A stretch of 64,000 nucleotides of DNA, from contig NIVC01001154.1 in the NCBI GenBank assembly GCA_002269645.1, positions 62,001 through 126,000 of the forward strand, written 5' to 3'. A program made the translations under genes and the position numbers. The notes under the pieces were generated by a model that was given only the letters and a program-made list of their open reading frames with translations, was not told the origin of the DNA and did no database searches. Source of the DNA: Macrostomum lignano (Eukaryota). The stretch's first letter is position 1; each line of letters starts with the position of its first letter. Below, piece after piece: positions 5,884-47,403 of the stretch.

Positions 5884-6124
5884 TGTAAGACTTGCACTTT
5901 GTCGAGACGTAATTCAAACTCGATTCTGATTTTATATTTCGAGGTGCCGCGTCACTACTCCACTTAAAGTACCAACATGGTCTGATGCGAGAGCGCTTTT
6001 TTAAATTGGGGCGCACTTTCGGAAGTTACAACAAAAACATTATCGATAATATACACTAACAATCCTATAACCCCCAACTAAACAAAAATGCATCCATTGA
6101 AATTCAATGATGAGATTTGCTACA
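5884..6124 (-). repeat. 3' LTR of the gypsy element
   Basis: Matches 12438-12678; preceded on the minus strand by the polypurine tract (+ strand 6125-6136). Confidence 0.96.
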
Positions 6125-7047
6125 TTATCCCCCCCAACGGAAATTGACAATGTCCTCATTGGCAAAAAAACTGCATTACACAAGGAGAAAGTTACATGTA
6201 GTTTACCTCAATTTTACAGTCACAAAGTGCACGATATATGCATATAAGTAGTGAGCACATCAGTACTCGGCTTAATGCTACAGATCGGCGACAGAGGCGA
6301 AGCACCGCACTGTGAGCAGCCAAGACGCATCGCAAAAAAAAACGGGCAACCAATGCTTCCATAACATTTCGGATGCTTGATTCCCCACAGAAATGCACAA
6401 TACAGGGTTATAAACACATGAAAACAGCCCAAAGGGGACTTGCGACATGCCAACTTGACAGTTGAATACATTGAATTGTGCGATTTCAATGGAACCAGGA
6501 ACAGCAATCGGGCGATTTAAGGGTACAATTGCGATTAAATGAACGAATAGTTGGATTGATAGGTTATGCCTTAATAAGAAGCAATAAAAGAATTTTTTTT
6601 AAGTTATGCGATTATTTTGATATTGAAATATTGAGCGATAAAAGCGAAAGAAATATTTGCACAGAAGGCATGAAAATAATAAGTAACACTGAAGTATTTC
6701 GCGAATGCATTAAAACAGCTGAAATAGAGCAGCACAATTAGATCAATAATAAAAACACGACCGTAAATTCCAACAGAATTCTAAAGGGTATGCAGTACAG
6801 CGGCACGGCTGCGCTCAACTAGGGCCAAACTGAACAATTACTAATCCCCACAGTCCACAACCCGCCAAGCATCGACCACCGCCACGCAAAAGAGGACTCA
6901 AGACAGATGGGGCAGCCAAAACGCGAACAAAATTGCGATTAAAACTTAAAACATTGTACATGCTGAACTTCAATTAGAGAAAAATTTTACACTCTGCATT
7001 TTTTTTAGTCCAAGAAACCTCAGCACAGTCCATATCCTCACACTTTA

Positions 7048-10000
7048 TCAAATGACGACCCAATCAGCGTCAAGCACTTCACTGCTGTCGTCGCTGGCCG
7101 CTCCGCTCCGAGGCTGATCTGGGGGCAGTGGCTGATGCGCTCGCTTCAGTTTGTTGACGTGGACCACCCGGCCAGCATCGCCATCCTTGTACTCAACGGG
7201 GCGGACCAGGTAATTGACAGGCGATGTACGCCGCAGAACTCGAAACGGTCCGGTCCACGGTGCCTGATGCTTCGGTGGCAGGCCACTCGTCCGCGACAGG
7301 GCCGACGGCGGCACAAAGAGCCACACCAGGTCGCCTGCTCGAAAACGGCGCCGCGCCGCCTTCTGGTCGTAATAGCGCCGCTGCCGTCTTTGTGCCGCTG
7401 CTGTCGCCAGCCTCACGGATTCGAAGGCGCTGAGCAGTCGATCTCGGTTGTCCGCGGCGAATTGTCCTGTAGTTCTCGGTGGCTCCGGCAGTCGGTAGAC
7501 AATGTCCAGCGGCAAGGTCACCTCTCGGCCTGTCATCAGAAAGTGCGGCGTGAACCCGGAGGTTGCGTTGACACTACTGCGGTAAGCAAGGAGACAGTGT
7601 GGCAACACCTCCTCCCACTCGTCGAACTGGACGGTCTGAAGGTGGCAGCGGAGCATCTGGTGGAGTGTGCGATGGAACCGTTCTACCAGACCGTCACACT
7701 GCGGATGGTAACCAGACGTCCGCGTCTTCTGTACGTCGAGCAGTCTGCACAGGCTCCGGATTATTTTCCCGTCAACGGCCTTGCCACGGTCGGAGTGGAG
7801 GATGTGCGGTGCGCCCCACCGTGACACCCAATTGTCAAACAGCGCCCTGGCAATTGTTGCTGCTTTCTCATCCGGCATAGGCACCAGCTCCACCCACTTC
7901 GTGAAGTAGTCCATGATCGTCAACAGACGATCATTTCCATGCCGAGACACGCCGATCTTAACCACATCGATGCCTATGCGCTGCATCGGGAAACTGCTCA
8001 CTATCGATCGAAGTGGTGCCCGCTGATGGCCGCTGGTTTTGGCGCGCTGGCACACCTGGCATGCTCTGACTGCAACTCTGATGCTCTCGGACATTTTCGG
8101 CCAGTAACACCTCGACTTGAGGCCTGCCAGTGTCTTCGCTTCGCCCAGATGACCAACTTCGTGAATCTCATCGATCAGCTGCTGTTGCTGGCAACGCGGG
8201 ATTACAGGCACGGGCTTCGACTCCACCAGTCTGTGCAGGGCTCCATCAACGAAACATAGTTCTTTGATCTTCTGCGCCAGGATCAGGCTCCCTGGTGGTA
8301 GTCGGGCTCGTTGCTGGTCGCTGAGTCTTGTCTTGCCTTTGGCGAGAAGACGAAATACTGGTCCGATGTCAGCGTCTTTGAGCTGCCGCTCACGCAGCGT
8401 CAGAGACTCGTTCGACTGCATTGCTCTCGCCTGGCCGGTCTCATCGTCGCCATCATCATCCTGGTCATCACTATCGCTGAACTCCTCGCTTTCGCTTGGC
8501 CTCGGCTGCAGCTGCTGCTTCCGTCTAGATGGAGCGCGGCCAGCAGTCCTAGGGTCGTTCTGAGGGTCGGCTGCTGAAGGCGCAGGGTCTGTCGTCGCCA
8601 CGTTGACCAGCGCGAGTTTAGTACCACCAGCTTCCACTTGACAGGGTGTTGATGCCGTTTGCACTGGTGTTTCAGCGAATTTTTCTGCTTGGCAAGCTAC
8701 GTTCGCAGCCGGCCTCGCTGTCTCCGCAATTGGCTCCGTTTGACAAGCTACCGTAGCTGACGGCTTCCGTACTTCAGCTGCCGATTCTGGCCGACAAACC
8801 CGGCACTGGCTCGTACATTTCGATGTCCGGCGTGAAAGTGCATCGGCATTCGAGTGCTGACGTCCAGGACGGAACACTATCTCGAAGTCAAACTCGTCGA
8901 GGATTTGCAACCATCTCGCTAATTGACCCTCCGGTTCCTTGAAGTTCAGCAGGTGCGTCAGGGCTTGATGATCGACTCTGATCGTGAATGGCCGTGCCAG
9001 CAGATAACTTCGAAATTTCTTTACAAATTCGACAACTGCCAGTAGCTCGCGCCGTGTCACGCAGTAATTGCGTTCAGCCCGAGACAGCGTGCGACTTGCA
9101 TACGCCACGACTCGCTCTTCACCAGCCTGAATTTGCGACAAAACAGCACCAACTGCGCAATCACTGGCGTCGGTGTCCAAGATGTACGCTCCGCCAGTGT
9201 CGCTGGTGTCCGGAAAGGCCAGGATCGGCGCGGATGTAAGCACTTGCTTCAACTGGTTGAAGGCCACTTCGGCGGCTGGTGTCCATTCAAAGCCGGTTGT
9301 CAGAGTCAGTCGCCTTAGCGGTTCTGCAATCTTGGCGTAGTCGCGAACAAATCTCCTGTAGTACGATGTCATGCCCAGGAAACTTTTGACGTCCTTTGGC
9401 GAGTGCGGTGTTGGCCAGTCGCGCACTGCTGCTGTCTTCGACTCGTCGACTGCAATGCCAGTCCTGGAGACTCGGTGACCCAGAACGATGATGCTGGAAT
9501 TGGCGAAACGACATTTGGACGGCTTAAGACGCAAGTTGGCTTCGCGAAGACGCTCTAGCACCGCTCTTAGCCGATTGTTGTGTTCGGCCATCGTCCGGCC
9601 CATGACGATAACATCATCTATGAAGACAAGGCACGCTTGCCACGTGAGTCCCCGGAGCACTAATTGCATCAAGCGCTGGAATGTAGCCGGTGCATTGCGG
9701 AGGCCGAATGGCATTACGTTGAACTCAAAAATGCCTTCGTGGCAGACGAATGCCGTTTTTTCTTTGTCTTTCTCATTCATTTCAACTTGCCAATATCCGC
9801 TTTCCAGGTCGAGTGCGGAGAAAAAACTGTTGCCCTCCAGCGCATCCAGCGTGTCGTCAACGCGAGGCATTGGAAATGCATCGGGCTTGGTTACCGAGTT
9901 GAGCTGCCGGTAGTCGAGACAAAAACGTGCCGACCCGTCTTTTTTTCGAACCAGGACAATCGGCGACGCCCACGGTGAAGATGATGGCTGAATGACACCT

Positions 10001-11070
10001 CTGCTCAGCATGTCTTCGACCAGCTCTCTTTGCTGCGCAATTGCCGTAGGAGCTGCACGGCGTAGACCTTGCCGGATCGGTCTCGCATCACCGGTGTCGA
10101 TGGTATGGCTCAGCAGACGGGTGCAGCCCTGGTTGCCAGGTGATGCGAACACGTCGTTGAATTCCAAAAGGAGGTCTCTGATCTGCTGCTGTTCACTCGC
10201 TGAAATTTCGTCGGCAATGTGCACTTCTCGAAGCCATGGTGCATTGCCATCTATTGAGGTTGTCGCTGTTGCCATGCTGGTAGACTGGAGCTGCGTCCCG
10301 CCTTGGCTGCTGAGTGGCGTGAACCATCCGATGGTGTCGCCTTCTCTGACAGCCACCGGTGCATCGCTAGCGTTGATGATTGCGACGCCCATGCCATTGT
10401 TCGATATTTTGGCTACACAGCGAGCAATCAAGACCTTCGATGACCTGCTACCGTTGACGATGCCGGGTGCCTCCGAACTTGTCCATGCGGTCACGTGTAA
10501 CGGTCGGACTGGAACGGTCCAACCTTCACCAGGCTGTAACTGAACTGCTGCTGCCGCCACCAGTTTGCTTGACTGCGCTGCCTGCTTCGACTTCCGCAGC
10601 GGCACTGTTGCTCCAAGGCCATTGAAAACGAGACATCCCGAACCGAGATGAATTGAGCAGTCTTGCTTGTCAAGAAAGTCGCATCCCAGAATTATAGGTA
10701 CATTTAAGTCTGTCACCACCAGAAAGGTGTGTTGAAACTGGACGGATCCGAGAGAGAAGTACAAATGAATCTCACCCAGCACGCTCGCCGGATTGCCACT
10801 CACGCCATAGATGGTAGTTTTGCTGGGTTTGAACTGCCGCCTGATTGATCGCGCGATGTTGAGACTGATACAGGAAACTTCGGCACCTGTGTCGATCAAG
10901 CAGGGCCGACGACGTCTGCAGATGCGCGCGGTGACGAAACGCGCTTGACCGGGCTGGCAGCTGGGGCGTGAGGGCGGGGCCGATTTGCTCAGTGCCGAGA
11001 GGGCCGGTACTGGCCCTGTGGACCAGCCCCCCTGGCGTTTGGGCAGTTCCTTCGAATGTGACCTGGAAGA
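7048..11070 (-). CDS. pol: Gypsy Pol (protease, RT, RNase H, integrase), in the -1 frame relative to gag
   Basis: LIDTGAEVS protease; FCLDYRQLN and CLVFIDDVIV RT; ILDTDASDCAVGAVL RNase H; HEVGHLG...CQVC HHCC; RIGID/HSDRG/GLVERFH DDE core; WTGPF C-terminal motif; frame open from the TAA at 11073-11071 to 7048. Confidence 0.96.
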   Translation of the reverse strand, partial: SSRSHSKELPKRQGGWSTGPVPALSALSKSAPPSRPSCQPGQARFVTARICRRRRPCLIDTGAEVSCISLNIARSIRRQFKPSKTTIYGVSGNPASVLGEIHLYFSLGSVQFQHTFLVVTDLNVPIILGCDFLDKQDCSIHLGSGCLVFNGLGATVPLRKSKQAAQSSKLVAAAAVQLQPGEGWTVPVRPLHVTAWTSSEAPGIVNGSRSSKVLIARCVAKISNNGMGVAIINASDAPVAVREGDTIGWFTPLSSQGGTQLQSTSMATATTSIDGNAPWLREVHIADEISASEQQQIRDLLLEFNDVFASPGNQGCTRLLSHTIDTGDARPIRQGLRRAAPTAIAQQRELVEDMLSRGVIQPSSSPWASPIVLVRKKDGSARFCLDYRQLNSVTKPDAFPMPRVDDTLDALEGNSFFSALDLESGYWQVEMNEKDKEKTAFVCHEGIFEFNVMPFGLRNAPATFQRLMQLVLRGLTWQACLVFIDDVIVMGRTMAEHNNRLRAVLERLREANLRLKPSKCRFANSSIIVLGHRVSRTGIAVDESKTAAVRDWPTPHSPKDVKSFLGMTSYYRRFVRDYAKIAEPLRRLTLTTGFEWTPAAEVAFNQLKQVLTSAPILAFPDTSDTGGAYILDTDASDCAVGAVLSQIQAGEERVVAYASRTLSRAERNYCVTRRELLAVVEFVKKFRSYLLARPFTIRVDHQALTHLLNFKEPEGQLARWLQILDEFDFEIVFRPGRQHSNADALSRRTSKCTSQCRVCRPESAAEVRKPSATVACQTEPIAETARPAANVACQAEKFAETPVQTASTPCQVEAGGTKLALVNVATTDPAPSAADPQNDPRTAGRAPSRRKQQLQPRPSESEEFSDSDDQDDDGDDETGQARAMQSNESLTLRERQLKDADIGPVFRLLAKGKTRLSDQQRARLPPGSLILAQKIKELCFVDGALHRLVESKPVPVIPRCQQQQLIDEIHEVGHLGEAKTLAGLKSRCYWPKMSESIRVAVRACQVCQRAKTSGHQRAPLRSIVSSFPMQRIGIDVVKIGVSRHGNDRLLTIMDYFTKWVELVPMPDEKAATIARALFDNWVSRWGAPHILHSDRGKAVDGKIIRSLCRLLDVQKTRTSGYHPQCDGLVERFHRTLHQMLRCHLQTVQFDEWEEVLPHCLLAYRSSVNATSGFTPHFLMTGREVTLPLDIVYRLPEPPRTTGQFAADNRDRLLSAFESVRLATAAAQRRQRRYYDQKAARRRFRAGDLVWLFVPPSALSRTSGLPPKHQAPWTGPFRVLRRTSPVNYLVRPVEYKDGDAGRVVHVNKLKRAHQPLPPDQPRSGAASDDSSEVLDADWVVI

Positions 11071-12392
11071 TTACAGCTGTAACACACTGGCATTGGTCGT
11101 TGCGACGGATGATGGCCAGCTTGAGCTTGGGCCTGTTGCTGAAGTGGTCTTGGGGTCGCATGCGGCTGTCGATTCAGTGGCTTCCACGATGTCGTTGGGT
11201 CACTCTGGTGCTCACCCCCAGGTCGTTGTCCATGCATTGGCAGAGCTGCTGATCCCACCACGGGTGCCGACGTCGCCGTGCCGCGTTGATGCTGCTGATT
11301 TTGTCCTTGGCCTTCTAGGAATTGCTGAGTCTCGCGGATCTGCTGAGCCCATCGGAGCGCTTGCTCTGTTGTTGTCACTGGCATTGGCATATTAAGAAGA
11401 CGCTCTGTCACATAGCTGTTGTTTAGGCCCTGGATAAACTGGTCCAAGACAGCTTGTTGAAGGAACTCGTGAGCACCTGCATCAGGAAATGCTTTGACAG
11501 CCAGGCGTTGCAATGCAGTGAGAAACTGTTCGAAGGTCTCATCTTTTCCTCGGCATCGACTTCGAAGCTCAAGCCGAATCAAGGCTGTACTCTTTGCTCC
11601 TCCGTGCCGCGCTCGCAGAAACTGTAGCAGTGAGTCATACCGTGCTCCAGGAAGGTGCTCCAGGTTTGAACCAACTGGCAACCCATGCAGGACGCACTGC
11701 TGGTCGAACCAAGCTGCGTACGTGGCAAACGCGGGCCCTAGATAAGCAATTAAAGTTGCAATTTTGCCGTGCTCACCCAATCCTGGGAACCGACTCATGA
11801 ATGCTGACATGCGGCTTAGGAAGTCGTCAAAATTCTCTCGGCTATTGAATGGTGCAGGCTTGGGCACTGGTGGTAAGGGAGGCTGACTGAATTGATGCTG
11901 CACTGGGGCATGCACTGCCTCTGCATAGGTTGGTGTCAGTCGAGCCCCTGGTGTTGGTGCTGCCTGTTGTCCATGGTACAGGTGAGGCATACCTGTGCAC
12001 GGCCTGGTGTTATTGCTGTTGGTTGCTCCTCCTTGCATCGGGAATGCTGTCGTAGGTTGAGGTTGCCTCTCTGACTGTAGTGGATCTGGCGAGCTTGCAG
12101 CTTCACACTGTTGTTGCACTTGCACTCGGTGCTCGGCATAATCAGCAGAAGCTAAATAATCATGGCACCTGTGTCTGTGTCTCCTTACTGGGCATGTCTC
12201 AGCACTGTTGATCGCATCGTCGAGCGTTTCAATTGTGTCAGATTCATGGAGATCGTGGTAACTCTGTTTTCCTCGGTCCTGCTCTGGATGACTGGCTGCT
12301 GCAGCTGCCGCTGCGGCACCGTGTATGGCTGTAGTAGGTATAGGCCTTAGTACATCTCGGCCACGAAGTTGCAGAAAGTCTTGCCTCCACAT
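10989..12392 (-). CDS. gag: Gypsy Gag with C-terminal CCHC zinc knuckle
   Basis: Open frame, first ATG at 12392; capsid-like ETFEQFLTALQRLAVKAFP...LDQFIQGL; CYSCNLPGHIRRNC knuckle. Confidence 0.92.
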   Translation of the reverse strand: MWRQDFLQLRGRDVLRPIPTTAIHGAAAAAAAASHPEQDRGKQSYHDLHESDTIETLDDAINSAETCPVRRHRHRCHDYLASADYAEHRVQVQQQCEAASSPDPLQSERQPQPTTAFPMQGGATNSNNTRPCTGMPHLYHGQQAAPTPGARLTPTYAEAVHAPVQHQFSQPPLPPVPKPAPFNSRENFDDFLSRMSAFMSRFPGLGEHGKIATLIAYLGPAFATYAAWFDQQCVLHGLPVGSNLEHLPGARYDSLLQFLRARHGGAKSTALIRLELRSRCRGKDETFEQFLTALQRLAVKAFPDAGAHEFLQQAVLDQFIQGLNNSYVTERLLNMPMPVTTTEQALRWAQQIRETQQFLEGQGQNQQHQRGTATSAPVVGSAALPMHGQRPGGEHQSDPTTSWKPLNRQPHATPRPLQQQAQAQAGHHPSQRPMPVCYSCNLPGHIRRNCPNARGAGPQGQYRPSRH

Positions 12393-12418
12393 GCTCAATT
12401 TCGCTCCAAGGACTTCGG

Positions 12419-16409: not shown

Positions 16410-19400
16410 ATGAGGCTGCGGATGTGGCGGCCCCCAGCTGCTGCAGCTGTGGCCGGTATCGTCCTTGCTCAGCTTCTACTTTGCTCGCTACTTTCTGCTA
16501 TCAACAAACGATTCGACAGCCGCGGCATACCGGCTGTCATTCATCAGATGGCAGCCGGGTCCGGCCGCATCCCGGTAGCTTATGCTGATTACGTGACTTC
16601 CTGGCTGTCGGTGCATCCGAGCCACGAGTACCGCCTCTGGACGGACTCGGCCTTGCGACAACTGATTCGAGGCCGCTACCCAGAGGCTGCAAACTGGACA
16701 GCCAGCCTGCTGAGGTCCCGGCTAGAATTCTCCGATGTGTCGCGCTATTTCCTGCTGCTTGAGTTTGGCGGACTCTATGCTGATATGGACGTGAGGGTCA
16801 GGTGCGACCATGTTGTGACATGTGATGCATGTACATGTACATAATACCTGAATTTTTGGAGGTAGCTGTGATGCGCCATTCGACACAATTATGGGCTGCC
16901 ATTAGAGTTAATGAGACGCCATGGTAGCCGACGGTGAAGCGCCAATGGGAGTTAATGAGGCGCCGTGGGAGTTATTGAGGCGCCATGGGAGTTAATGACA
17001 CGCCATAGAAGATAATAAAGCACCATGGGAGGTAATGACACGCCATAAAAGATAATGAGGCTCCATGGGAGGTAATGAGGCGCCATAGGAGTTAATGACA
17101 CGCCATATAAGTTAATGAGACGCCATGGGAGGTACTGAGGCGCCATAGGAGTTAATGAGGCGCCATGGGAGTTAATGAGGCGCCGTGGGAGTTAATGAGG
17201 CGCCACGGGAGTTAATAAGGCGCCATGGGAGTTAATGAGGCGCCATGGGAGTTAATGAGGCGCCGTGGGAGTTAATGAGGCGCCATGGGAGTTAATAACG
17301 CGCCATGGGAGTTATTGAGGCGCCATGGGAGTTAATAAGGCGCCATGAGAGTTATTGAGGCGCCATGGGAGTTAATGAGGCGCCGTGGGAGTTAATAAGG
17401 CGCCACGGGAGTTATTGAGGCGCCATGGGAGTTAATGACACGCCATAGAAGATAATAAAGCACCATGGGAGGTAATGGCACGCCATAAAAGATAATGAGG
17501 CTCCATGGGAGGTAATGAGGCGCCATAGGAGTTAATGACACGCCATATAAGTTAATGAGACGCCATGGGAGGTAATGAGGCGCCATAGGAGTTAATGAGG
17601 CGCCATGGGATTTAATGAGGCGCCATGGGAGTTAATGACACGCCATATAAGTTAATGAGGCGCCATGGGAGTTAACGAGGCGCCATGGAAGTTAATGAGG
17701 CGCCATGGGAGTTAATAAGGCGCCATGGGAGTTAATGAGGCGCCATGGGAGTTAATGAGGCGCCGTGGGAGTTAATGAGGCTCCATGGGAGTTAATAACG
17801 CGCCATAGGAGTTATTGAGGCGCCATGGGAGTTAATAAGGCGCCATGGGAGTTATTGAGGCGCCATGGGAGTTAATAACGCGCCATGGGAGTTATTGAGG
17901 CGCCATGGGAGTTAATAAGGCGCCATGGGAGTTATTGAGGCGCCATGGGAGTAAATAAGGCGCCATGAGAGTTAATGAGGCGCCATGGGAGTTAATGAGG
18001 CGCCGTGGGAGTTAATAAGGCGCCACGGGAGTTATTGAGGCGCCATGGGAGTTAATGACACGCCATAGAAGATAATAAAGCACCATGGGAGGTAATGACA
18101 CGCCATAAAATATAATGAGGCTCCATGGGAGGTAATGAGGCGCCATAGGAGTTAATGACACGCCATATAAGTTAATTAGGCGCCATGAGAGTTAATGAGT
18201 TGCCATATAAGTTAATGAGACGCCATGGGAGTTAATGACATGCCATATAAGTTAATGAGGCGCCATGGGAGTTAACGAGGCGCCATGGAAGTTAATGAGG
18301 CGCCATGGGAGTTAATAAGGCGCCATGGGAGTTAATGAGGCGCCATGGGAGTTAATGAGGCGCCATGGGAGTTAATGACACGCCATAGAAGTTAATGAGG
18401 TTTCATGGGAGTTAATGACACGCCATAGAAGATAATGAAGCACCATGGGAGGTAATGATACGCCATAGAAGATAATGGGGCGCCATGGGAGGTAATGACA
18501 CGCCATATAAGTTAATGAGGTTTCATGGGAGTTAATGACACGCCATAGAAGATAATGAAGCGCCATGGGAGGTAATGATGACTTACTTGACTTAGCTGCA
18601 GGGCTGTCCCGGAGGGGACACAGCGGGAAGGCGCGGGCGCCCATTCCGCTAGTCCCTGAACGGCCGACGCGTCGCTATGGACGGAGGGTTGGCGCCGCCC
18701 AGGGAGGTCCCCCAGTGTCGCCAGCAGCTATGGTGCTCTCTGGAAAGGAGAGTTCAGCCCTGCGGGTGGCCCGAAGGTAGCGCATGAGCTGATTAAAGTT
18801 TTCGGGTTTGCACGCTTCAGTAATAGATGTGTGTGGCCCGAGGTAAGTGAGTCTGGCCCGCGTGAAGGCGGGACAGATGCTGACGAAATGCTCAGCGGTT
18901 TCGTCACCTGAGTTGCAGAAACTACAGGTGGCGTTGGTGGCGTTGCCCTGCAGGTACTGGTGCCTGGAGAAGCAGCCGTGACCAGAGAGGGTCATGGTGG
19001 CAGCCCGGATGTCTCTGCGCGAGAGGCGCAAGAGGAGCTTCCGGAGCTGGTGAGAGGGCTGAGGGACAGCGCCTCTGGATTGCCTGCAGTTCGTGCGGTT
19101 CGCCCAAGTCGAGCGGTGCTGAGTCCTGATCCACGCTTTGATGCGCGAGTCGATGACACAGCCAGGAATCGGGACAAGAGGTTCGGGGCCGAGAGAGGAG
19201 CCGGAGGCACCAACTTTTGCAAGGGTGTCAGCCAACTCATTTCCTCGGATCCCCACATGCCCCGGAACCCACTTAAGGGTAATTTTGTTGGCGGAACCCA
19301 ACACATTGAGGAGTTTGATACAGTCAAGGACTGTAGCAGAGTTGGTGCTGCAGCCACTGATGGCGTGCAAGGCAGCTTGGCTGTCCGAATGGAAAATGAT

Positions 19401-22400
19401 GTTCTTACCAGTAACGCCAGTGGCGAGAAGCTCTGCAGTGCAGGAGCTGATGGCCAGAACTTCATTTTGGAAAACACTGGAGTTGACCCCAGTGTATTGA
19501 GCGTGGGTAGCGATGACCCTCCCGTTCAGAAAGATTCCAACACCAAAGCCGGTGTTGGCTGACTGCTTAGAACCGTCGGTGTAGCAATGAAGCTCACCAG
19601 GGTTCCAATGGTCATTGATGTTATCGCGCGAGTCGATAGCTACGGAGTAGCGCTGTCTCAGGTTGAGCGTTGAGGCAATGCCATCGGTGAAGACGCGATT
19701 GGCCTGACACTCGTTGAGAAAGTTGAGGCACAGATCGCTATGCGGGACAAGGTTCCGCTTAGCAGGTGCTCTCATGTAAATGAATTTGACGCCGGCATCA
19801 ATTAGACGCCGCGTCGTTCTAGCCGCCTCACCCCTGATGAAGAGGTCAAGAGGCGGAAGATTAAGAAAGGCCCCCATGCCAGCAAAGGGCGTGGACCTGG
19901 TGGCGTTGCAGATGAGCCTACACGCTCTGCCTTGGATCGTGTTGAGCAGGTCTGCATGGCTTTTGACCTGGGTAGCGCTAACCCAGACAACAGAGGCGTA
20001 CGTAATGGCAGGTCTAACTACGGAAGTATAGATCCACCAAAGCCGCTTTGGGGATAGACCCCAAGAAGTGCCAAGTGCTCGTCGGAGCTGGGCCAGGATG
20101 GCTGAGGCACGCTTAGCTTTTGCTTTCACGTGGAAGGACCAGTTGAGCCGGTGGTCAAGTGTGACCCCGAGACATCTGGTCTGGTGCGCGAAGGCAATAT
20201 CTCTGCCGTAGAGCTGCAGAGGACGTATGTTCCAGCGTAGTCTGCTGGTAAACATAATGGCAACGGTTTTGGGCTCAGAGAGTTCCAAACCATTGTCATT
20301 GGCCCAGGATTCTGCTTTGCGGATAAAGCTCTGCATCAGATCCCTGAGCGTGCTGGGAGACGGTCCTGCCACAATGGCCGTGACGTCATCAGCATACCCG
20401 ACTTTGAAGACGGGGTCAGGTCGGGAGTCACTCAGAAGAGCGTCCATGACCAGGTTCCAGAGCGTCGGGGTGAGGACTCCGCCTTGGGGTCCACCCTTAC
20501 AGACTCTGGTGGAGGCAGTTTGCCCAAGAAGTTGGGCAGTGACCGTACGGTTGGAGATCATGTACATGATCCACCGTATGAGGGTAGCATGAGCTTTGCG
20601 ATTTTGAAGGGCCCTCTGAAACGCTTCAAAGATAACGTTGTCGAAGGCGCCAACAATGTCAAGAAAGAGAGCCAGGGCGTAACCGTCACCCAGTACCGCC
20701 CGTTCAATCTTTTCGACAATCGCATGCAGGGCGCTGTCAGTCGACCTCCCGGTACGGAAGGCGTGCTGATTATTGCTGAGGGGCATCGCTGTCAGCTCGC
20801 AGGAGAGCAGCCGCCAGAGAATAAGCCTCTCAGTGAGCTTAAGCATTGCTGACGTTAAGCTAATTGGCCGGAAGGCCTTGACGCTTTGGTAGTCACCCTT
20901 CCCAGGTTTGGGAATAAAGACTACTCGAGCTTCAGTCCAGCTTTTGGGAACGTATCCCAGCTGGATAGAGGCCCGCATAAGATTGCGGGTGAGTCTCAGG
21001 AACGAGGGTATCTTGGCTGCTTCACGAAGGAGAACAGGGTAGATACCATCAGGTCCAGGAGATTTGAAGGGTTTGAAGGTTCTGACCGCACGAGCGATTA
21101 GGTCTTCAGTGACAATGCCCGCCGCTAGGGTGGCTCCATCCATCGAATGGTTGGGCTCCGGTCTAGCAGTAGGTACCCTCGGGAAGAATGTGCTAAGCAT
21201 ATGCTGAAGCACTTCTTCAGGGTCTTTAGTAAGAGAGCCATCATCTTTTTTGATCATGGCTAATTTGGACATTTTGTCCATTGTAAGGGCCTTGACAAGC
21301 CTAGAAGTAGGTCTGTCTTGATCCAATTCATTGCAGAATTGGCGCCACTTACATTCCTTGGCCTTGCGCACTTCAGATTTGAAATTGCGGGAGGCTTGCC
21401 GGAAAAGCTCCATGTCCTCCGGGTTTCCGGTCTTCATGGCACGGCGATGAAGGCTTTTGGCCTTCCGCCTGAGTTTCCCCAGCTCCGGGTTCCACCACGG
21501 CGCCGAGGTCTTGCCTCTGTAGGCGCGAGCAGGACAGGCCGCTTCGTAGGCTGCAATAATGCAACCTGTCAGCGTCTCAGCCATATGATCCACATCCTCG
21601 CAGGTCTCAATCGGACGTAAGTCCGTGAGTTCCTGCAGGTGCAGATCAAGGGCAGCCTTGTAGGCCGCCCAATCAGTGTTGCGGATATTGCGTCTCCAAG
21701 TGATCGGAGACTGGGTTTTAGTGTCCGCGATATTAAAGGCAATAAAGCAGTGGTCAGACAGGGAGGGCTCCTCAGACCAGACTCTCCACTCCTTGACTCT
21801 GTCAAAGAGTCTTGGGGTAACGAGTGTGGCGTCGAGGACCTCGGTCCATCTGCCATTATTAAAGGTAGGGGTGCTGCCGCGGTTGCAGAGCATGAGGTTT
21901 GTGTTAGAGATGAGGGCCAGAAGCTCCTCTCCTCTAGTGTTGGTATCTTTGCTGCCCCAGTGCTTGTGGTGCGCGTTGAGGTCGCCCCCTAAGCACAGCT
22001 CAGCGTTCTGGGACTCGCAGTACTGCGCAAGGCGCAGTAAACTCTCGGGAGCAGGGTCTCTGTCGCCTGGGATATAAACCGAGGCAACAAGACACGTACG
22101 CGGAGAGAAATGATTAGATTGGATGACGCAAAGGTCTCCATCAGAGAGATCAGTCCTCAGCCAAGCCTGGAGATGGCTAGCAGCGAGGATAGCCGCTCTA
22201 GGGCGGCTGTTCCCCGGGCCACACACATAAAAATCAGAGTAGCCAGAGGGAATGTTGGGCAACTTACCGTTGCGCATCCAGGGTTCCTGGATCAGGATGA
22301 GGCCTGGCCTGTACAGCTCAGCAATCTTCATCAGATTTACTGACGCAGATACGCAATGCTGTAAATTTATTTGCAGACAGAATGTCGCTCCTTTGGCAGC

Positions 22401-25400
22401 GTGGAGCTTAGTCATACTGTATTAAATGCAATATCTGGCTAGAGCCCAGGGTCATCAAGGAGACTTGGACAACAGATCGTCCTCGTCCCAGGCCGCTGGG
22501 GCTTGACTGGGAGATGGGAGTTGGTCGACGTCCATGGCCTCCTCACCCCCACCGGCCCCCCAGCAGACTCCTCAGGCTCCGATGACAGGATGGAGGAAGC
22601 TTCCTCACCTGCATCTTTACCTTCAGACCCCACCAAGGTGGCCGAGGAGAGCTCGGATTCCGAAGACCCGGCCTCGTCCTCAACTCCTTCTCCGACTGGC
22701 AGGTTTGGTTCCCGGGGCTCGGCCGGAGCCGTTACCGCGGTCGCCGAACTGCTGCTAGCAGAGGGGCGAGATGCAGCTTTGGCTTTGGGATCGGCTTGCG
22801 CCTTTCCTTGGGCCTTAGACTGCGCCCCGCTCTTGCCGGAGATGCCGGGGTTGGCAGTAGCCTTCCCTTTGGCAGACTTTCCTCGGCGCAACTTGAGCTT
22901 GAGGGCACCCAGCTGGAAAGAGGATCCATTAGGGTACCGACTCGCCCAAGTGCTGGAAAGGCCGAGGACAATTGAGTTGCCCGTCTCCCCCCTGCGGACT
23001 TTACGGTGATACACCAGTCCACTAGCAGGGAGGTCGGGGTTCAGACGCAGTAGGACCCGGCGAATAACGTCTGGTCCAGCTGCGGTGCTCTTAGCAGGGA
23101 CGAAAACCACATAGGGTATCGTCTTTGGACGCTGGCCCTCGCGAAGAAAAAGAGCTCCGCCAAGGTCAGCATCCAAGGAGACCGTCGGTAGCCGCTGGAG
23201 CAGCCGCCGAGCGTCCTCCTCGCTGCTAGGAGCAATAAGAACGAATGTGCTTCGCAGCACCATCCGCTCAACGCCGATGGAGATTCCCTCCTCGACAGTC
23301 AGCTCAATCAGATAGGAGTCAACAGCACTCCACACTTTTTGAAGCTGATCAGTGGTCCAGTCCTGGTCGCGACCTTGGATGATCACTCCCGGGATTTTGG
23401 CCTTGGCCTTCGCCGCAAAGGTAGCTCCCGAAGGAACCTCCTTGTTGGCAGTGGCCATTTGTTGCGCCGTGGTTTCGGCCTCAGCAGCCGCGGCAGCAGC
23501 TCCAGGGAGCGCCGCCGCTGAACTACTGGAGCTTCCACCGGCCGGCCCGCCTGGTTGCCTTGGGACTCCAGTCGCTTCAGCATCCATGGTGGACGCCGCC
23601 GCTTTGGCCCCCGCAGCTCCCTTCTTGGCCTGCCTTTTGGCGCGTTGTTTAGCGCGTTTGCGCTCAAGCCGAGCCCGCTGAGCTTCATCGGATCTGCCAG
23701 ATTTGGCCGGTCCTTTAGGCTCAGAGCTCGCGGTTCCCTTAGATCCACCAGCGGAGCTGGCAGGTCTTAGGGTATTTTGAGTTTGGTAGCTCTGGTCGGA
23801 TCTGCCAGCAGAGCCAGCCGGTCCTTCCTTTGCCACAGTTGAATCAGTCGGTTGGGATCTGCCAGCAGGGCCGGCCGGTCCTTCGGACTGAGGTTGGGGT
23901 TTAGAAGGGTCCCCATCCCTAGAAATAGCTTGTTTATCCATAGTCGGCTCGAAGGCCATGATAAAAGGTTGGTGGGCTACCCTCAAAGGGGCGCGGTACC
24001 CACCCGGCCGCTCCACCTGACCGGGCAGTAGGCCAATAGCACCCTCAAGGCTGGCCCGACACCAGGAGGGGGACCGCTTGCGACCGGACTACTCCCCGGC
24101 CTTCCAGCCCATCGGCACGGTCAACACCTTAGGCATTAGAGAGTACGTTGAGCAGTACCACGGCCTGCAGGTTGGCGAGCCAGACCCGCATACCCAAATT
24201 CGGCCGAAGCCACTGGATAGGGTCGCCAGCGCCGGAGCCCAGTCTGTCCAGCAGCCCTAGGGACTGCCTTGAACACACGCGGGGACGAGTACCCTGGGTC
24301 GACTTGCGAGACAGCGTGAGGGGGGGGGTCTGCGGCTGCCAGAGGCAAATAGAGGGTGCAGACCTCCCACCAGCCTTGACCTGCTGAAGATAGGGGCAGG
24401 CGTGAAGCATCGCAGACCTTAGCCCATGGGCCTAGTCTGTCTCATACTTCACTGGCATGCTGAATACGCCTTCGCGTGCGGGAGGTAATGATACGCCATA
24501 AAAGATAATGAGGCGCCATGGGAGGTAATGAGGCGCCATAGGAGTTAATGACACGCCATATAAGTTAATGAGACGCCATGGGAGTTAATGACATGCCATA
24601 TAAGTTAATGAGGTGCCATATAAGTTAATGAGACGCCATGGGAGTTAATGACATGCCATATAAGTTAATGAGGCGCCATGGGATTTAATGAGGCGCCATG
24701 GGAGTTAATGACACGCCATGGAAGTTAATGAGGCGCCATGGGAGTTAATAAGGCGCCATGGGAGTTTATGACATGCCATGGGAGTTAATGACACACCATG
24801 GAAGTTAATGAGGCGCCATGGGAGTTAATGAGACCCAATGGGAGTTAGTGAGGCGACATGGAAGCTAATGACGCGCCATGGGAATTAGAGGTTCAATAAG
24901 GAGTTAATGAGGCGCCATGAAGCTAATGACGCGCCTATCTATAGTGAGGTTCTATGGGGAGTTAATGCATGAGGCGCCATAGGAATTAATGGAGTTCCGT
25001 GGGAGTTAGTAAAGCACTATGCGAGTTAATGAAGCGCCATGGTAGTTGGGTAGTTGGGTTAGTTGGGTTAGGGGGGACTTTAAATAACATATCCATTATA
25101 TTCCAATGCTCCTCAGACGGCCGCTGACCGAGTATCTGGACGGCCTGGCCATTCGTCTCGGCGCTGTTGGCGCCTGCGGTTGCTACCTCGGCCAGGAACC
25201 GAAGGCGCACGCTGTGCTGCTGTATGGCCTGGCCAGTTTGCCCAGCAACGCGCTGATGGCCTGCCAACCTGGGCACGAGTTCATGCTCTACCTGCTGCGC
25301 AAGCTGCCGCTCTACCTGGCCTGGCACGAGTCCAGCCAGGGCAGCGAGGCGGAGAGGCTGAGGCGCAGGCAGGGATTCCACGCCAGCAGGCTGACTGGTG

Positions 25401-34276: not shown

Positions 34277-36587
34277 ATGCTGGAGCATCCACGCACGGAC
34301 GCTCTGCTCGCAGAAGCCTTGGCTCAGCTGGCGAGACTGCGCGCCGAACGGGCCGGACGGGGAGAGAAAGCCGAGAGAAACGCTCGTAGCTTCTCTTGGC
34401 GATACCGCAATGAGCTCGAGGCGGAAGTGGAGCCGGTAGAGGCCGCTGAGTCAAGCCGGAGCAACGACGATAGAAGTAGCAACCGGCGGCGACGGCAGCG
34501 AGAGCGCTGCGACAGCGCCACGGAGACGGAGACCTTGATAGTGACCCCGCTGGAGACCTGCCGGACCGATGCTACGGGCGCCGAATTGTTGCTGCACCGC
34601 TCGGCTCGGGACGTCCCCAGCCAAGAAACGACGATGCGGCAAACACGTGACGCTGCTGTGGCCACTGAGACGGACCTCGAGACGGCGACCTCTTCGGCAG
34701 CGACAAAACAACTGTCGGTACCAGCAGCGGTTGAAGTCAAGGAGGAAAAACCTACCGCCGACCGTTTCGACTTTGCCAGCCAGATGCCGACGCCTCGTCT
34801 GGCTGCGTCAACCGACTCGGAGGTGGCCGCCATCAACGGCTTGGCGGACGCGGCAGTTCAGAAGGAGGCGGAGGAGGAGGCAGAGGTGAGCGACCGGACA
34901 GCCTCTCCGCTGCCGCATCGCAGCCGGGAGGTGGAGCGAATGCAGGCTGCCCTGGAGCTGTCTCTGCAGGCCGACCAAGTTGACGACGTGATCGGTGAAG
35001 TTGACGATCGAATTGCCGATCTGCGCCGGCAGGTTGAGGCTTTGAACGAGCAGATCGCGGCGGAGGAGGCCGTGCGTGAAGAGGTACGATCTGTAGGCAT
35101 TCAGAGCCACTGTTATTGAGCATATTGACAGCTACATGTGATCAAGATAAAGCAACTGTACATACTTGTTTCCCCGACTAATATTGCAGCTGCAACAAAA
35201 GCGACTAGAAATTCTGCAGCGCAGAGTGGACGTTCTGAGAGGTGAGTGAAAGCTGCGAGTATTTTTCATGACAGCACCAAGGACTGCTCAATTTGGACGG
35301 GAAACTACGTTTCTTAGATATAGGCTATAGAATTAACATAGAATCCTATTTTTCCTAACAAAAATCTCTACACGAATAGCAATACAGCTACGAGTATAAG
35401 CTAAAAGGCAAGTCATATCAAAACATAAACATTGAGTCCGCCTGCTATCAAAAGCAGTGACAAATCTAGTGCTGAAAAAAGGAAAACCTCCATTCTCCGT
35501 GTTGTATTTTTTTCAATAAGAAATCTGCATATTCTAGGAAAAATATAAATTTCCAAGTAACGTAGTTTCCTGTCCTTCTTGAGTAGTCCTTCGACCGGAT
35601 TCCCTTGACAGCCATCCCCATCTTATCAAACTACTGAACCTGTTCCTTGTCTCCCAATTTCAGGTTGCTTCGAGTTGCCTGTACTTAATGGAGGCGAACC
35701 CTCTTCGGCGAGGTTTGCACGCGACGACTTCTGTGAAACTGAAAACGCTGCGTCGCCTTCGCCACCGCCGCCGCCGCAGCAGCAGCAGCAGTCGTTCCCC
35801 GCCGATTTTGAAACGGATGCAGAGACCGGCCAATCCGGCAGCGAGGTGCAGCGTCAGTCGCTGGTACACCGCGTCCTACTTGACGACTCTGAAGCCTCGG
35901 CAGCTAACGGAGGCGGCCCCCTGGCGGTGGACTCACCCAGAGATGCCGATCTCATCCAGCAAACCCTCGATCGACTATCGGCGCTTTCGCAGCCGCCACC
36001 GCCGCCTTCAAAGCAAGTTCAACAAGGCCGGCGTCGGCCGCGAAAGCAATGCCAGCCCGCGGAGCCGGAGTTGCCGCCGGCCGAGGTGCTCAGCGACGTC
36101 TTGTCGGCGGCGCCGCGCGAACCGCCAAGTCGACCTGCATCGGCTGCTGCACTCGCCGGCGACGATGGCAAGGCGCGCATCAGCCGCCGCACCGCCTCAG
36201 AGACACGGCTTCCGATCGACGAGGCCTGCGCAGGCCGCGGCAGCAGCAACGTTAATAACTCAACAAGTCACCGACGCCCCCGACGCCGGCGGGTCAGCAG
36301 CGGGCGCTCCAGCGCGACGATCCGGCGTTCGCGGCGGCTTTGCGTGAGTATTTGCACGCCACGAGCGGCAGCGGCTCGACTTCGTCAGACGCCGATGCTG
36401 AAAGCTCCGCCGATCGTCCGTCGAAGCGGCCAATCCGACTGGACGCTCATCCAGGAGCTCCAGTACTCAGCGCCGTCAGTCACAACGGGCTGCTCTACAC
36501 CGGCTCGGCTAGCGGCACCGGCGCTGTTCTCTGCCTGGCAACGCGGCGACGTCTGGCCGACTTTCACTGCGGAGACGACGAGCGCGA

Positions 36588-36618
<31 letters not shown>

Positions 36619-37479
36619 ATCATCTGTCTGGCACTGTGCGACGGCTTGCCAAATCGACTGCTCGCCTGCGCTTCGAACGGCGTCGTGTCGCTTCACGACG
36701 CTCGAAGCGGCCGCCGCCTGGCCCAGTGGCGTCTGCCGTCGGAGCTTAGCGCAGCCCGGGCCAGCCACGGCCGGCTTTACCTGGGCCTGGCCGGCGGCCG
36801 GCTGGCCACCTGCGATCTGGCGGCACCGGCGAAGCCGACTGTTTTAACCGGCTTGCCGGCCCTGAACGACGCCGTCACGGCGGTGGAATCGATGCCGGCT
36901 GACAGTCGCGACCGTCAGCTGATCATCGGCTGCGCCAGCGGCTCCATTAGAATGTTCGACGAGAGCACCGGTCGCGAGCTGGCCGCACTGGGCAGCCACG
37001 CGCGTCATGGCTGCGGCGCTGGTGCCGTTCTAGCGATTCGAGCCCCAGACTCCTGCTGGATCTGCAGCCTCAGCGAGTGTGCAGCGCTTGTACACAGCCG
37101 GACTGAGCGGCAGGCCGCTGCCGCCTGCTGGTCCACCCGTCGCCTCCTTGGCCCGATCGAGCCAGTCCGTCTGGCCGCGCTGGAGACGGTCAGCCGTTGG
37201 CTTCTCGTCGGCTGCTCCGACGGCTCCGTCCGCTGCTTTGCCGATTTTAATCGGCGCTCTAACTCTGAATTGGCGGCAACAATTCTGATTGGCTCGCGTC
37301 ATCGGCCAATCACCTCGCTGGCCGTCTGCCAGGACAGTCGGCTGGCCTGCGGCGACGCAGCTGGACAAGTCGAACTTCGCCACCTGCCGGCAGCTGCCTG
37401 CGACGACGACTACGACGACGATGACGATGAAGACACTCCGACGAGGACGACCCCGACGCTGCCACCGATTGCTTTCTGA
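33818..37479 (+). CDS. ZNF106: ZNF106-like protein (N-terminal C2H2 finger, coiled coil, C-terminal WD40); exons 33818-35083, 35190-35241, 35664-37479 with a frame break near 36259-36340
   Basis: CFVC...EHIQSAAH finger; GAG|GTACGA to TTGCAG|CTG gives EEAVREE|LQQKRLEILQRRVDVLR, then phase-1 GTGAGT to TTTCAG; WD40-like NGLLYTGSA, GRLYLGLAGG, QLIIGCASGSIRMFD recall vertebrate ZNF106 (from memory). Confidence 0.7.
35277..35592. mobile_element. MITE in intron 2 of the ZNF106-like gene, ~35-bp imperfect TIRs
   Basis: CCAAGGACTGCTCAATTTGGACGGGAAACTACGTT inverted at 35559-35593 (29/35 matches); interior 35440-35520 resembles 38235-38310. Confidence 0.7.
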
Positions 37480-44416: not shown

Positions 44417-47403
44417 TCAAGCAGCAGCGCCTTTATCATAATCGTCGCCATCAACGGGCAAGTAGTTGCCACCGTCTTCAGCCTCGTGCGGCCGCTCGTC
44501 CATCGGAATCGCGTCCGGATCGTTGGCATCCTCAACGGACAGCACCTGACGGCTGAGCAGCCGAGGCGCCAGCAGGGAGATGAGCAGTGCGCCAAGCGGC
44601 GCGGTTAAAACAATGGCTAGCACAGACACCGTTAGTATCTGGGCGCCCATGGCCTGCGCCTCGGGCCCGGCGCCGGTTCTGTAAAAGCAAATATCTAACT
44701 GGTTTGGTTGGGCGTTACTAACCCTCTCCGGGTTTTTGTTGGGCGCTACTAACCCTCTCCTGGTCTTTGTTGGGCGCTACTAACCCTCTCCTGGTCTTTG
44801 TTGGGCGCTACTAACCCTCTCCTGCTGGTCTTTGTTGGGCGCTACTAACCCTCTCCTGGTCTTTGTTGGGCGCTACTAACCCTCTCCTGGTCTTTGTTGG
44901 GCGCTACTAACCCTCTCCTGGTCTTTGTTGGGCGCTACTAATCCTCTCCTGGTCTTTGCTGGGCGCTACTAACCCTCTCCGGTCTTTGTCGGGCGTTACT
45001 AACCCTCTCCTGGTCTTTGTTGGGCGCTGCTAATCCTCTCCCGGTCTTTGTTGGATGCTATTGTACTAACCCTCCCCGGGTCTTTGTTGGGCGCAGCGCT
45101 CTTATGTTCCAGCCAGCGGCCCAGACTCGATTCCAAGTGCAGTCACATTCATTTTGGGGCTAAATTGGAATCTCGGCCTGGCTCTGCTCGTGCAATTAAC
45201 GGCCTTAAGGGCCAACCCCCAAGGCACAGTGAAGTGTGCATGCCTAACGATAAATAAAGTCAGGGCCGCTGTGCACTCCTGTGTGAGTGTGTGCCTGTGC
45301 GTATGACTGCGTACGTATCTGCGCGCTTGTGTGCCTGCTCAGGGGAGTCGGCAGAATGGGCAGCAATGCCTCTCGCCGGTTGTGTGACAATGTCGCTTTA
45401 AAGTGCGCTAGGATGCACACAGCCCCCCTGCTTCTAATAAAAAAATCAACCCTCCCTTGGCGTTTGTGTCGCCTCCTGCCCTCGACCAGCTCCATACGCA
45501 CCTGTAGGCGGTATCCAACACGGCAGGCCCAATAGCAGCCTGCACCGTGGCTTTGGGCAACCAGGCGAATGGGATGAAGAATCGCTCGCGCACGGTGAAA
45601 CCGGCCCCGGTCACCGCGATAAACGAGGCAACCATGCGGAGCAGCAGCCCGATGCCCAGAGCGGCCAAGCTGAGCCCGATTGCGTCTGCCTGCAGGCTGC
45701 CAACGTCAACTTCGACGCCGATCAGACCGAATAACATTGGCTGGGCGATCCACCAGCAGACGTCCACCTAGTGACAAGAATTAAAGTGCACAGTGATTGT
45801 TTCTGGAGAGGAAAAGCTCAAAGAGGGGTAGCGGAGTCCCATCAAATGACCTGGGAGGATCAGGTAGCGGTGCGGAGTCCCATCAAATGACCTGGGAGGA
45901 TCAGGTAGCGGTGCGGAGTCCCATCAAATGACCTGGGAGGATCAGGTAGCGGTGCGGAGTCCCATCAAATGACCTGGGAGGATCAGGTAGCAGTGCGGAG
46001 TCCCATCAAATGATCTGGGAGGATCAGGTAGCGGTGCGGAGTCCCATCAAATGATCTGGGAGGATCAGGTAGCGGTGCGGAGTCCCATCAAATGATCTGG
46101 GAGGATCAGGTAGCGGTGCGGAGTCAAATCGAATGATCTGGGAGGATCAGGTAGCGGTGCGGAGTCAAATCGAAGCGACGCAGCAACCAGCCTAAGGTCC
46201 TTCAAGGGTATTTTTGCAACGCACCGGTGCTAGCAGCGGGTTTTTATCGTCAGTCCAACCGTCGCGAGATCGCCAGCCGATGGCGGCCACAAAAGCGGCA
46301 GTCAGGCAGGCCAGAGCGCCGGCGCCGGGCAGTTTGAGCACAACGGAGCCAAGCAGGGGTGCGAGGCCGCAGGCCACCAGAAAGCAGAATCGATAGAACA
46401 CGAAGCGGCGATGACCGGCCGGCGGCAGGAACCAAAGCAGCAGGCCCAGGACGATGCCAACAACAACGCCTAGTAGAGCTTCGAGCGGTCCGCGGGCGAT
46501 GGTCAGGGCGAGGCTCTCGCCGCTGCCAAACACGATGCTGAGCAGGACGCCGAATCCGGTGATTGCCAGCACATCGTCGACGCTAGCGGCAGCAATCACC
46601 AGCGTTGGAATTCCCTTAGCAACTCCGTAGCCCTCCGAACCGATAGCCAGCATAGATGGCACAACAACGGCGGGAGACACGGCTGCCAGTACGAAGCCTA
46701 ACAGGAATCCCCAAGCCCACGGCAGTTTGAGCAGCAGGTGAGACACGATCCCAATAGTGACAGCTTCGGTTAGGCAGGGCGCGAATGCCAACAGGCCGAC
46801 GTGCAGCGACAGGGCGCGGAGCCGCTTCGGGTCGAGGCCCAGGCCGGCTCGCAGCAGGATGATGCACAGAGCCACGCTGCGCAGAGTTGACGACAGAGTC
46901 TTGTCGATGGCCAGAGCGAAATCGGACAGGAACGGGACGCTGCGCAGGAAACAGCCGGCCAGCAGCATGCCCAGCAGTTTTGGACAGCGGGGAATCAGGC
47001 CAAACAGTTCGCCCGTTAGCATTGACAGCGTGAACACCAGGTAGAGGCCGAACAGGCCGCCAGTGCACTTCTGCTTAATAGTAGATGGCCTGATCGAGTC
47101 AGTTTGATTTGCTGATGATATTGTCGAGTTGCTACTGTTAGTAGAGTCTGGCAGTTGCACAGTTATGCAGGTGCCAGGCACAGACAGTTCGGGAAACAGA
47201 GACCAGAGTGCGGCATACAGGAGCAACACAGCAGCTAGGCCAGCTAAGAGTCTGCCTGTGCGACCATGTGGCGGGCACAGCAGGTCGTGGCGCAGTCTCT
47301 GGGCTGTGCTAGGGTTATCTGGCAGCCTGTGTCTCTCTACTAGACACCATTTGTAGCATGTTCTATTGCAGCATTGTGCGCAAGCATATGATGGGTCAGC
47401 CAT
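44417..47403 (-). CDS. SLC9B2: SLC9B/NHA-family Na+/H+ antiporter, ~568 aa; exons 47403-46225, 45767-45502, 44678-44417
   Basis: CPPHG, IILLRAGLGLDP, AAVSPAVVVP, AAASVDDVLAITGF (paired Asp), AWLPKATVQAAIGP, LTAPLGA motifs; GT/AG junctions in matching phases; B1 vs B2 cannot be distinguished. Confidence 0.92.
44700..45090. repeat. 31-bp minisatellite (GGTCTTTGTTGGGCGCTACTAACCCTCTCCT) in NHA intron 2
   Basis: Tandem units visible directly. Confidence 0.93.
45091..45445 (+). mobile_element. 5'-truncated copy of the tRNA-derived SINE
   Basis: Collinear with 55980-56320, ending CTAATAAAAAAA. Confidence 0.88.
45832..46172. repeat. 41-bp minisatellite (GCGGAGTCCCATCAAATGACCTGGGAGGATCAGGTAGCGGT), ~8 copies, in NHA intron 1
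   Basis: Head-to-tail units with no spacers. Confidence 0.95.

Follow-up and report, generated by a model that had tools for sequence, protein, structure and literature searches.

The 64,000-nucleotide (nt) window of Macrostomum lignano genomic DNA analysed here contains, on its minus strand, a 5,900-bp non-LTR retrotransposon (LTR, long terminal repeat) of the long interspersed nuclear element (LINE) type, running from 24479 to 18580 and carrying two intact open reading frames (ORFs). The very first bases of this element have the layout of a self-cleaving, HDV-like ribozyme (HDV, hepatitis delta virus). The 5′ untranslated region (UTR) of 520 nt is followed by ORF1 (22439-23959, minus strand, as for all element features below; 506 aa from the first ATG, without a Pfam match) and by ORF2 (18675-22415, 1246 aa), which encodes an apurinic/apyrimidinic (AP) endonuclease, a reverse transcriptase (RT), an RNase H and a C-terminal Cys/His motif. 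We take this domain order to be compatible with several clades, namely I, ingi, LOA, Nimb and Tad1. The 3′ UTR (18580-18674) lacks poly(A), ends in ...CUGCAGCUAAGUCAAGUAAGUC with AAGU-type repeats at its terminus, and is conserved in a diverged relative, the contig L001 described below. The motif UAGCGGAAUGGGCG...CUGCAGCUAAGUCAA, which the 3′ UTR shares with L001 (5849-5965), is likely to be the site that the reverse transcriptase recognises. Macrostomum lignano UniRef proteins are 87-98% identical to ORF1, indicating that the family is young, and with its intact ORFs, these close matches and a perfect target-site duplication (TSD) the element looks recently active.

The insertion site lies in an array of 20-bp minisatellite units (16935-18578 and 24480-25047). 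The LINE splits this array, which is roughly 2.2 kb long and has the plus-strand unit GGGAGTTAATGAGGCGCCAT; at least 12 further minisatellite arrays, with periods of 16-41 bp, are present in the window. The TSD is 13 bp long (ATCATTACCTCCC), with its 5′ copy at 24480-24492 and a perfect duplicate as its 3′ copy at 18567-18579; C24480 in the 5′ copy would lie just ahead of the cut, at position -1. Once the element and one TSD copy are taken out, the surrounding repeat is back in its 20-bp phase, and the TSD is thus genuine and not a by-product of that repeat. This fixes the end of the element, so that the ribozyme helix P1 opens exactly on the element's own first base, G24479, as a first-pass annotation of the sequence had proposed.

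With RNA numbering that sets G1 at 24479, the segment 24479-24238 contains the complete set of parts of an HDV-like double pseudoknot in canonical order, as found by hand reading and by a scan with a self-written structure descriptor based on the published consensus. Every part listed in the first-pass annotation is present in the order given there. Both approaches find the helix order P1-J1/2-P2-P3-L3-P3′-P1′-P1.1′-P4-J4/2-P2′ (P, paired region; J, joining segment; L, loop) in the window and in L001. The 5′ strand of P1 (GCACGCG, nt 1-7, 24473-24479) starts with G24479, immediately 3′ of the proposed cleavage site, and pairs with CGCGUGU (24275-24281), in which U24275 is the wobble partner of G1. 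The two strands enclose the 174-nt J1/2 insert (24299-24472), the P2 5′ strand CCCA (24295-24298), P3 GGG (24292-24294), the loop L3 UACUCGU (24285-24291) and P3′ CCC (24282-24284), both P3 strands being identified by sequence reading and descriptor scan. Bases 2-3 of L3 (AC) form P1.1 through C-G and A-U pairs with GU (24273-24274). The sequence UCAA (24269-24272) separates P1.1 from the P4 hairpin, which together with a following GGA occupies 24247-24268. P4, assigned by sequence reading and constrained folding, consists of G·U, GCAG/CUGC, a bulged U, CC/GG and the loop CUAG, with possible outer U-A and C-G pairs that would use 24272-24271. J4/2 is CAGAC (24242-24246), with C24246, the counterpart of HDV C75, as candidate for the catalytic cytosine, and leads into the P2 3′ strand UGGG (24238-24241). 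Both P2 strands were placed by descriptor scan, constrained folding and pair count.

The published descriptor of HDV-like ribozymes specifies a G1-Y pair, U, C and G in L3, and C-R-R-A in J4/2 (PMC6326823), the U and G of L3 making a reverse wobble (PMC6326823, PMC3774820). In the window the first pair is G24479-U24275; its counterpart in L001 is G1-C194. L3 has the conserved U, C and G in both (UACUCGU in the window, UCUCCGU in L001), those of the window being U1, C5 and G6, equivalent to HDV U20, C24 and G25. P1.1 comprises two Watson-Crick pairs in each, A-U and C-G in the window, C-G and U-A in L001. J4/2 of the window, CAGA(C), fits C-R-R-A plus one base, and CUGC of L001 keeps the C and the G with the final A changed to C; in wider surveys the J4/2 consensus is C-N-R-A. 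The NCAA following P1.1, which is UCAA in the window and GCAA in L001, presumably corresponds to G40-C41-A42-A43 of genomic HDV.

Comparative evidence comes from L001, a 6,492-nt Logan contig from run ERR14788467, which is a different sample. Many ORF2 relatives exist in public assemblies, and L001 alone among those retrieved is both close and equipped with a 5′ UTR. It is 57% identical to the window element in ORF2 and 39% in the ORF1 core (central 179 aa), and its ORF2 is 68-69% identical to another Macrostomum lignano protein; L001 thus stands for a sister family whose source is probably a related worm. Homology to G24479 falls on the contig's first base. Its P1 is GCCUGC/GCAGGC (6 bp, G1-C), followed by a J1/2 of 163 nt, P2 CUCAGA/UCUGAG (6 bp), P3 GGG/CCC with L3 UCUCCGU, and P1.1 CU/AG, past which come GCAA, a 10-bp P4, G, CUGC and P2′. 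All 15 comparable pairs (100%) are paired in both the window and L001, and six of them differ on both sides: two in P1 (A-U to C-G and C-G to U-A), two in P2 and both in P1.1. A shift of the 3′ partners by 1-3 columns leaves only 21-54% of the positions paired and 0-2 double changes. The pair count used a two-row, hand-made concatenation of the proposed helices; MAFFT misaligns the core. These compensatory changes in P1, P2 and P1.1 strengthen the view that an HDV-like fold heads an intact LINE. They also bear out the earlier suggestion that the AC/GU P1.1 of the window is a compensatory change, both pairs being swapped in the CU/AG of L001. As a separate observation, L001 starts exactly at the ribozyme G1, yet extends about 500 nt past the 3′ end of the element into unrelated sequence (5966-6492). 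If ERR14788467 is an RNA-seq run, this shape would be expected of a 5′-cleaved transcript with 3′ read-through.

J1/2 is itself structured. Folded alone and separately, the inserts of the window (174 nt) and of L001 (163 nt) give a common predicted architecture in which a closing stem surrounds three hairpins (hairpins 1, 2 and 3 at about 24452-24402, 24401-24379 and 24376-24319 in the window); in the first two hairpins, pairs covary. The linkers are short, 3-4 nt to P1 (AAG in the window) and 7 nt to P2 (AAGUCGA in the window, AAGCCGC in L001). A layout of this kind, with a folded J1/2 and short linkers, activates large HDV-like ribozymes, and Agam-2 ribozymes with a structured J1/2 and short linkers are almost a thousand-fold faster (PMC4908430). 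The J1/2 pairings proposed in the first-pass annotation were upheld in part. The second of two GGUCUGC copies pairs with GCAGACC in the fold common to the window and L001. GAGACAG (24443-24437) and CUGUCUC (24314-24308) are complementary, but they pair in neither minimum-energy fold and have no equivalent in L001, GAGACAG sitting in a conserved J1/2 hairpin instead. Inside hairpin 1 lies a 41-nt block, GUAUGAGA..GAC.AGGCCCA.GGGCUAAGGUCU.CGAUGC (24407-24447; L001 33-73), with the highest conservation in the whole 5′ UTR relative to L001, above that of the catalytic core, which suggests a function of its own, for example protein or ribosome binding. The 5′ UTR downstream of the ribozyme (23960-24237) contains more blocks kept in L001, namely CCGGGGAGUA.UCCGG, UUGGC.UACUGCC and, immediately ahead of ORF1, GCGGC..GGUGGGUAC; these could be part of a translation-initiation structure for uncapped RNA.

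We consider it probable that the 5′ end of this LINE is a true ribozyme of the HDV-like kind, by which read-through transcripts are trimmed back to the element's 5′ end. This reading draws on the order of the parts, their coincidence with the element end, the compensated conservation of the fold and its thermodynamic plausibility. From these we infer self-cleavage and co-transcription with upstream sequence, as well as possible further roles of the fold in protein binding and cap-independent translation. In the proposed mechanism, the LINE would be transcribed within a longer RNA starting upstream, in the minisatellite or in a host gene. This RNA would adopt the nested double pseudoknot of P1, P1.1, P2, P3 and P4, with the structured 174-nt J1/2 domain keeping P1 and P2 together. 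C24246 and a bound Mg2+ would then catalyse attack of the C24480 2′-OH on the C24480/G24479 phosphodiester, yielding uncapped element RNA that starts with a 5′-OH G1. The trimmed, uncapped RNA would be translated and reverse-transcribed, and full-length reverse transcription would give new copies that start at G1 and adjoin the TSD.

Several features of the structure weigh against this reading. P2 of the window has only 4 bp (-4.1 kcal/mol), possibly extended past bulges, compared with about 7 bp in typical HDV-like ribozymes (PMC4908430). The first-pass annotation had rightly named it as the weak point; with 6 bp (-6.5 kcal/mol) in L001, the weakness is by this comparison peculiar to the window copy or family. 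P1.1 includes an A-U pair in both the window and L001 and is not made of two G-C pairs. In L001, J4/2 (CUGC) is without the usual A at position 4, and P1 has 6 bp with G1-C. Pairing of C24480 with G24274 could extend P1 in competition with P1.1, and extension of P1 at the expense of P1.1 is reported to lower the activity of R2 and L1Tc ribozymes (PMC3185411). The statistics are also thin, covariation in two hand-aligned sequences being a sign of consistency and not statistical proof. Furthermore, the minimum-energy nested folds of the window and L001 are without P1, though this is usual for such a pseudoknot. Forcing P1 and P3 while leaving the P2 and P1.1 strands free costs 5.3 kcal/mol in the window and 1.3 kcal/mol in L001 relative to the nested minimum. 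P2 alone returns 4.1 and 6.5 kcal/mol, respectively, with P1.1 not yet added, and the double pseudoknot is thus energetically competitive.

The model and homology searches supply the remaining points on that side. Of the two kinds of check proposed in the first-pass annotation, our own descriptor matches the window and L001, but the Rfam models (HDV_ribozyme, CPEB3, drz-Agam and related models) do not. No HDV-type match was obtained at gathering score in the whole window, nor up to E = 10 in 24100-24600, in the 3′ core taken alone (24228-24302) and in L001 164-248. Such a blank is expected because of the 174-nt insert inside P1 and the tiny conserved core, and argues little against the fold. 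Three more distant relatives with complete 5′ UTRs (L085, L086 and L087; ORF2 35-36% identical) have no such motif, and the ribozyme may thus be confined to Macrostomum-type families, or these relatives may use other 5′ ends. L087 (113-217) starts, directly behind a T-run, with a 9-bp stem (CCGGGCUGC/GCAGCCUGG) around some 87 nt of structured sequence; an HDV-like core is absent, and this is thus a 5′-end structure of a different kind. ORF1 of the distant relatives L085 (927-2582) and L086 (759-1916) matches Pfam DUF4780.

The alternative that survives best, though we judge it clearly unlikely, is a structured 5′ UTR without catalysis, acting as an internal promoter region, as a binding site for the element's own proteins or as a cap-independent translation element. 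The HDV-like arrangement would then be an inactive relic or a look-alike, and G1 would be set by transcription initiation. Many LINEs do have their transcription start at the first base. Conservation in the 5′ UTR peaks in a hairpin inside J1/2 and not in the catalytic core, and the weak P2 of the window, a P1.1 that is not G-C/G-C and the departure of the L001 J4/2 from C-R-R-A all fit this alternative. R2 protein, moreover, binds a structure within the extended ribozyme, for which a role like that of an internal ribosome entry site has been proposed (PMC6765202). However, a noncatalytic 5′ UTR leaves unexplained why P1 starts at base 1 in two diverged families, why the pseudoknot helices P1.1 and P2 covary, and why L3 retains its U, C and G alongside the preserved NCAA and the C directly 3′ of P4. 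Structural and catalytic roles are in any case compatible, since both occur in known retrotransposon ribozymes.

The frequency of the motif bears on whether the ribozyme could be a chance match. A loose descriptor (any L3, G-U permitted in P1.1) gave a flood of uninformative matches. The strict descriptor required a 3-bp Watson-Crick P3, U and G in L3, a 2-bp Watson-Crick P1.1, a P1 of 6-7 bp, a P2 of at least 4 bp and a C in J4/2. It still gave 56 matches in 930 kb of DNA, about one per 17 kb, and with loose matches everywhere the fold alone is thus weak evidence. NCAA directly following P1.1 was found only at the window site and at base 1 of L001, and at none of the 54 other strict matches. 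When the first 300 nt of the window element were shuffled with dinucleotides preserved, a match with P1 anchored at base 1 arose in 3 of 20,000 cases, against 4 of 20,000 for L001, a chance rate of about 2 in 10,000 per sequence; it is the position at base 1, rather than the fold, that is unexpected by chance. A chance descriptor match in a G+C-rich, highly structured 5′ UTR, to which the abundance of loose matches, the density of strict ones and the blank in Rfam would point, is therefore highly improbable given this anchored rate and the recurrence at the homologous place in L001, where six pairs differ yet are still paired.

Among further relatives, three proteins (P0006, P0007 and P0008) are 43-44% identical to ORF2, and their contigs end inside ORF1. 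Metagenome contigs L002-L021 contain no convincing HDV-like motif; a candidate at L002 67-149, rich in A+T, has a weak P3, lacks a P4 and was treated as chance. ORF1 of the window and of L001 reached no Pfam model. The full-length ORF1 query gave only three matches, all chimeric Macrostomum lignano UniRef models, and a profile search with the conserved ORF1 core gave none. An exact look-up of the window ORF2 sequence found it not on record, and the exact pattern of the conserved J1/2 block had no match in genome and viral contigs.

Elsewhere in the window, no second copy of the LINE was found. A second large element, at 7048-12398 (minus strand), is an unrelated and apparently intact Ty3/gypsy LTR retrotransposon with protease, RT, RNase H and integrase in pol and a zinc knuckle in gag. 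ORFs at 46192-47403 (minus strand; Pfam match to a Na+/H+ exchanger) and at 36340-37479 (plus strand; weak match to a WD40/beta-propeller) are probably host exons, judging by these matches. The exon for the Na+/H+ exchanger shares the strand of the LINE and is located 22 kb upstream of it, and no link to the LINE site could be made. The intron location given in the first-pass annotation drew no support from anything checked here.

The literature places this arrangement among known systems. Baggins of Drosophila is a LOA-clade element. HDV-like ribozymes at LINE 5′ ends have been described in R2, R4, Dong, L1Tc and Drosophila baggins (PMC3774820) and in RTE elements (PMC6765202, PMC4908430). 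The J1/2 loops of silkmoth R2 ribozymes span 216-498 nt, and in S. cynthia activity depends on a portion of this loop (PMC3774820). Structured J1/2 ‘P1.2’ domains have been published (PMC4908430), and the L1Tc ribozyme L1TcRz is active with a 1-bp P1.1 (PMC3185411). Thus, the novelty suggested in the first-pass annotation does not hold, as 5′-end HDV-like ribozymes, long J1/2 loops, structured J1/2 domains and a weak P1.1 have all been published before.

Close parallels are the L1Tc/ingi elements of trypanosomatids and Drosophila Baggins, in which, as here, the ribozyme occupies the first bases and cleaves at the first nucleotide of the element (PMC6765202, PMC3185411, PMC3774820). Like the window element, L1Tc encodes an AP endonuclease, RT and RNase H, and its TSD is 12 bp compared with 13 bp here (PMC6765202); it likewise has a weak P1.1, and release from read-through transcripts has been proposed for it. 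By contrast, L1TcRz is compact (77 nt), whereas the ribozyme described here takes up 242 nt with its 174-nt structured J1/2, and the present element differs from L1Tc and Baggins in having a free-living flatworm host and an ORF1 without a recognisable domain. R2 (Drosophila, silkmoths and many other animals) and R4/Dong share the double-pseudoknot fold and a very long J1/2, and in R2, as here, P1 covaries between species and the core bases of L3 are conserved. R2 differs in its restriction-like endonuclease and its single ORF, and 28S rDNA is its only insertion target. The cut made by many R2 ribozymes falls upstream, in the 28S sequence, while the present ribozyme is wholly internal to an APE-type two-ORF element in a minisatellite.

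In drz-Agam-2 (mosquito RTE), J1/2 has a single P1.2 helix and P2 has 12 bp, compared with a three-hairpin junction and a P2 of 4 bp here (6 bp in L001), and the LINE clade of the host elements differs. The genomic and antigenomic HDV ribozymes share with the window the helix order, the G1-U wobble, a 3-bp G-C P3, U...CG in a 7-nt L3, and a C that opens J4/2; we take the 5-nt J4/2 of the window to resemble the antigenomic form. They are unlike it in their J1/2 of a few nucleotides, a P1.1 of two G-C pairs and a 7-bp P2, and they process the products of rolling-circle replication, whereas retrotransposon RNA is the proposed substrate here.

A more far-reaching proposal, which we advance tentatively and think rather doubtful, is that the J1/2 insert of 165-175 nt does more than serve as a passive ‘pinch’ and is a conserved three-hairpin module whose well-conserved hairpin 1 binds element proteins or the ribosome, so that cleavage, uncapped translation and template recognition would be coupled within a single RNA domain of a two-ORF APE-type LINE. 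In combination with the P1.1 swap (AC/GU versus CU/AG), such a module would set these flatworm ribozymes apart as an HDV-like subclass of their own.

A literature search did not link Macrostomum and ribozymes beyond one passing mention. Ribozymes already known from flatworm LINEs include the R2 ribozymes of planaria (PMC3774820) and, in Schistosoma, variants of twister (PMC8501958). The arrangement of an HDV-like ribozyme at a LINE 5′ end is already known, and the present case is a further, well-supported example of it, of modest interest in that the host is a flatworm, J1/2 forms three hairpins and both P1.1 pairs have been exchanged naturally. The general understanding of retrotransposon ribozymes is unchanged by the finding. 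The P1.1 exchange between the window and L001 provides direct comparative support for the two-pair pseudoknot, in which G-C identity is not required. For Macrostomum lignano, a transgenic model with a very repeat-rich genome, the finding points to a LINE family that is probably active and may depend on read-through transcription.

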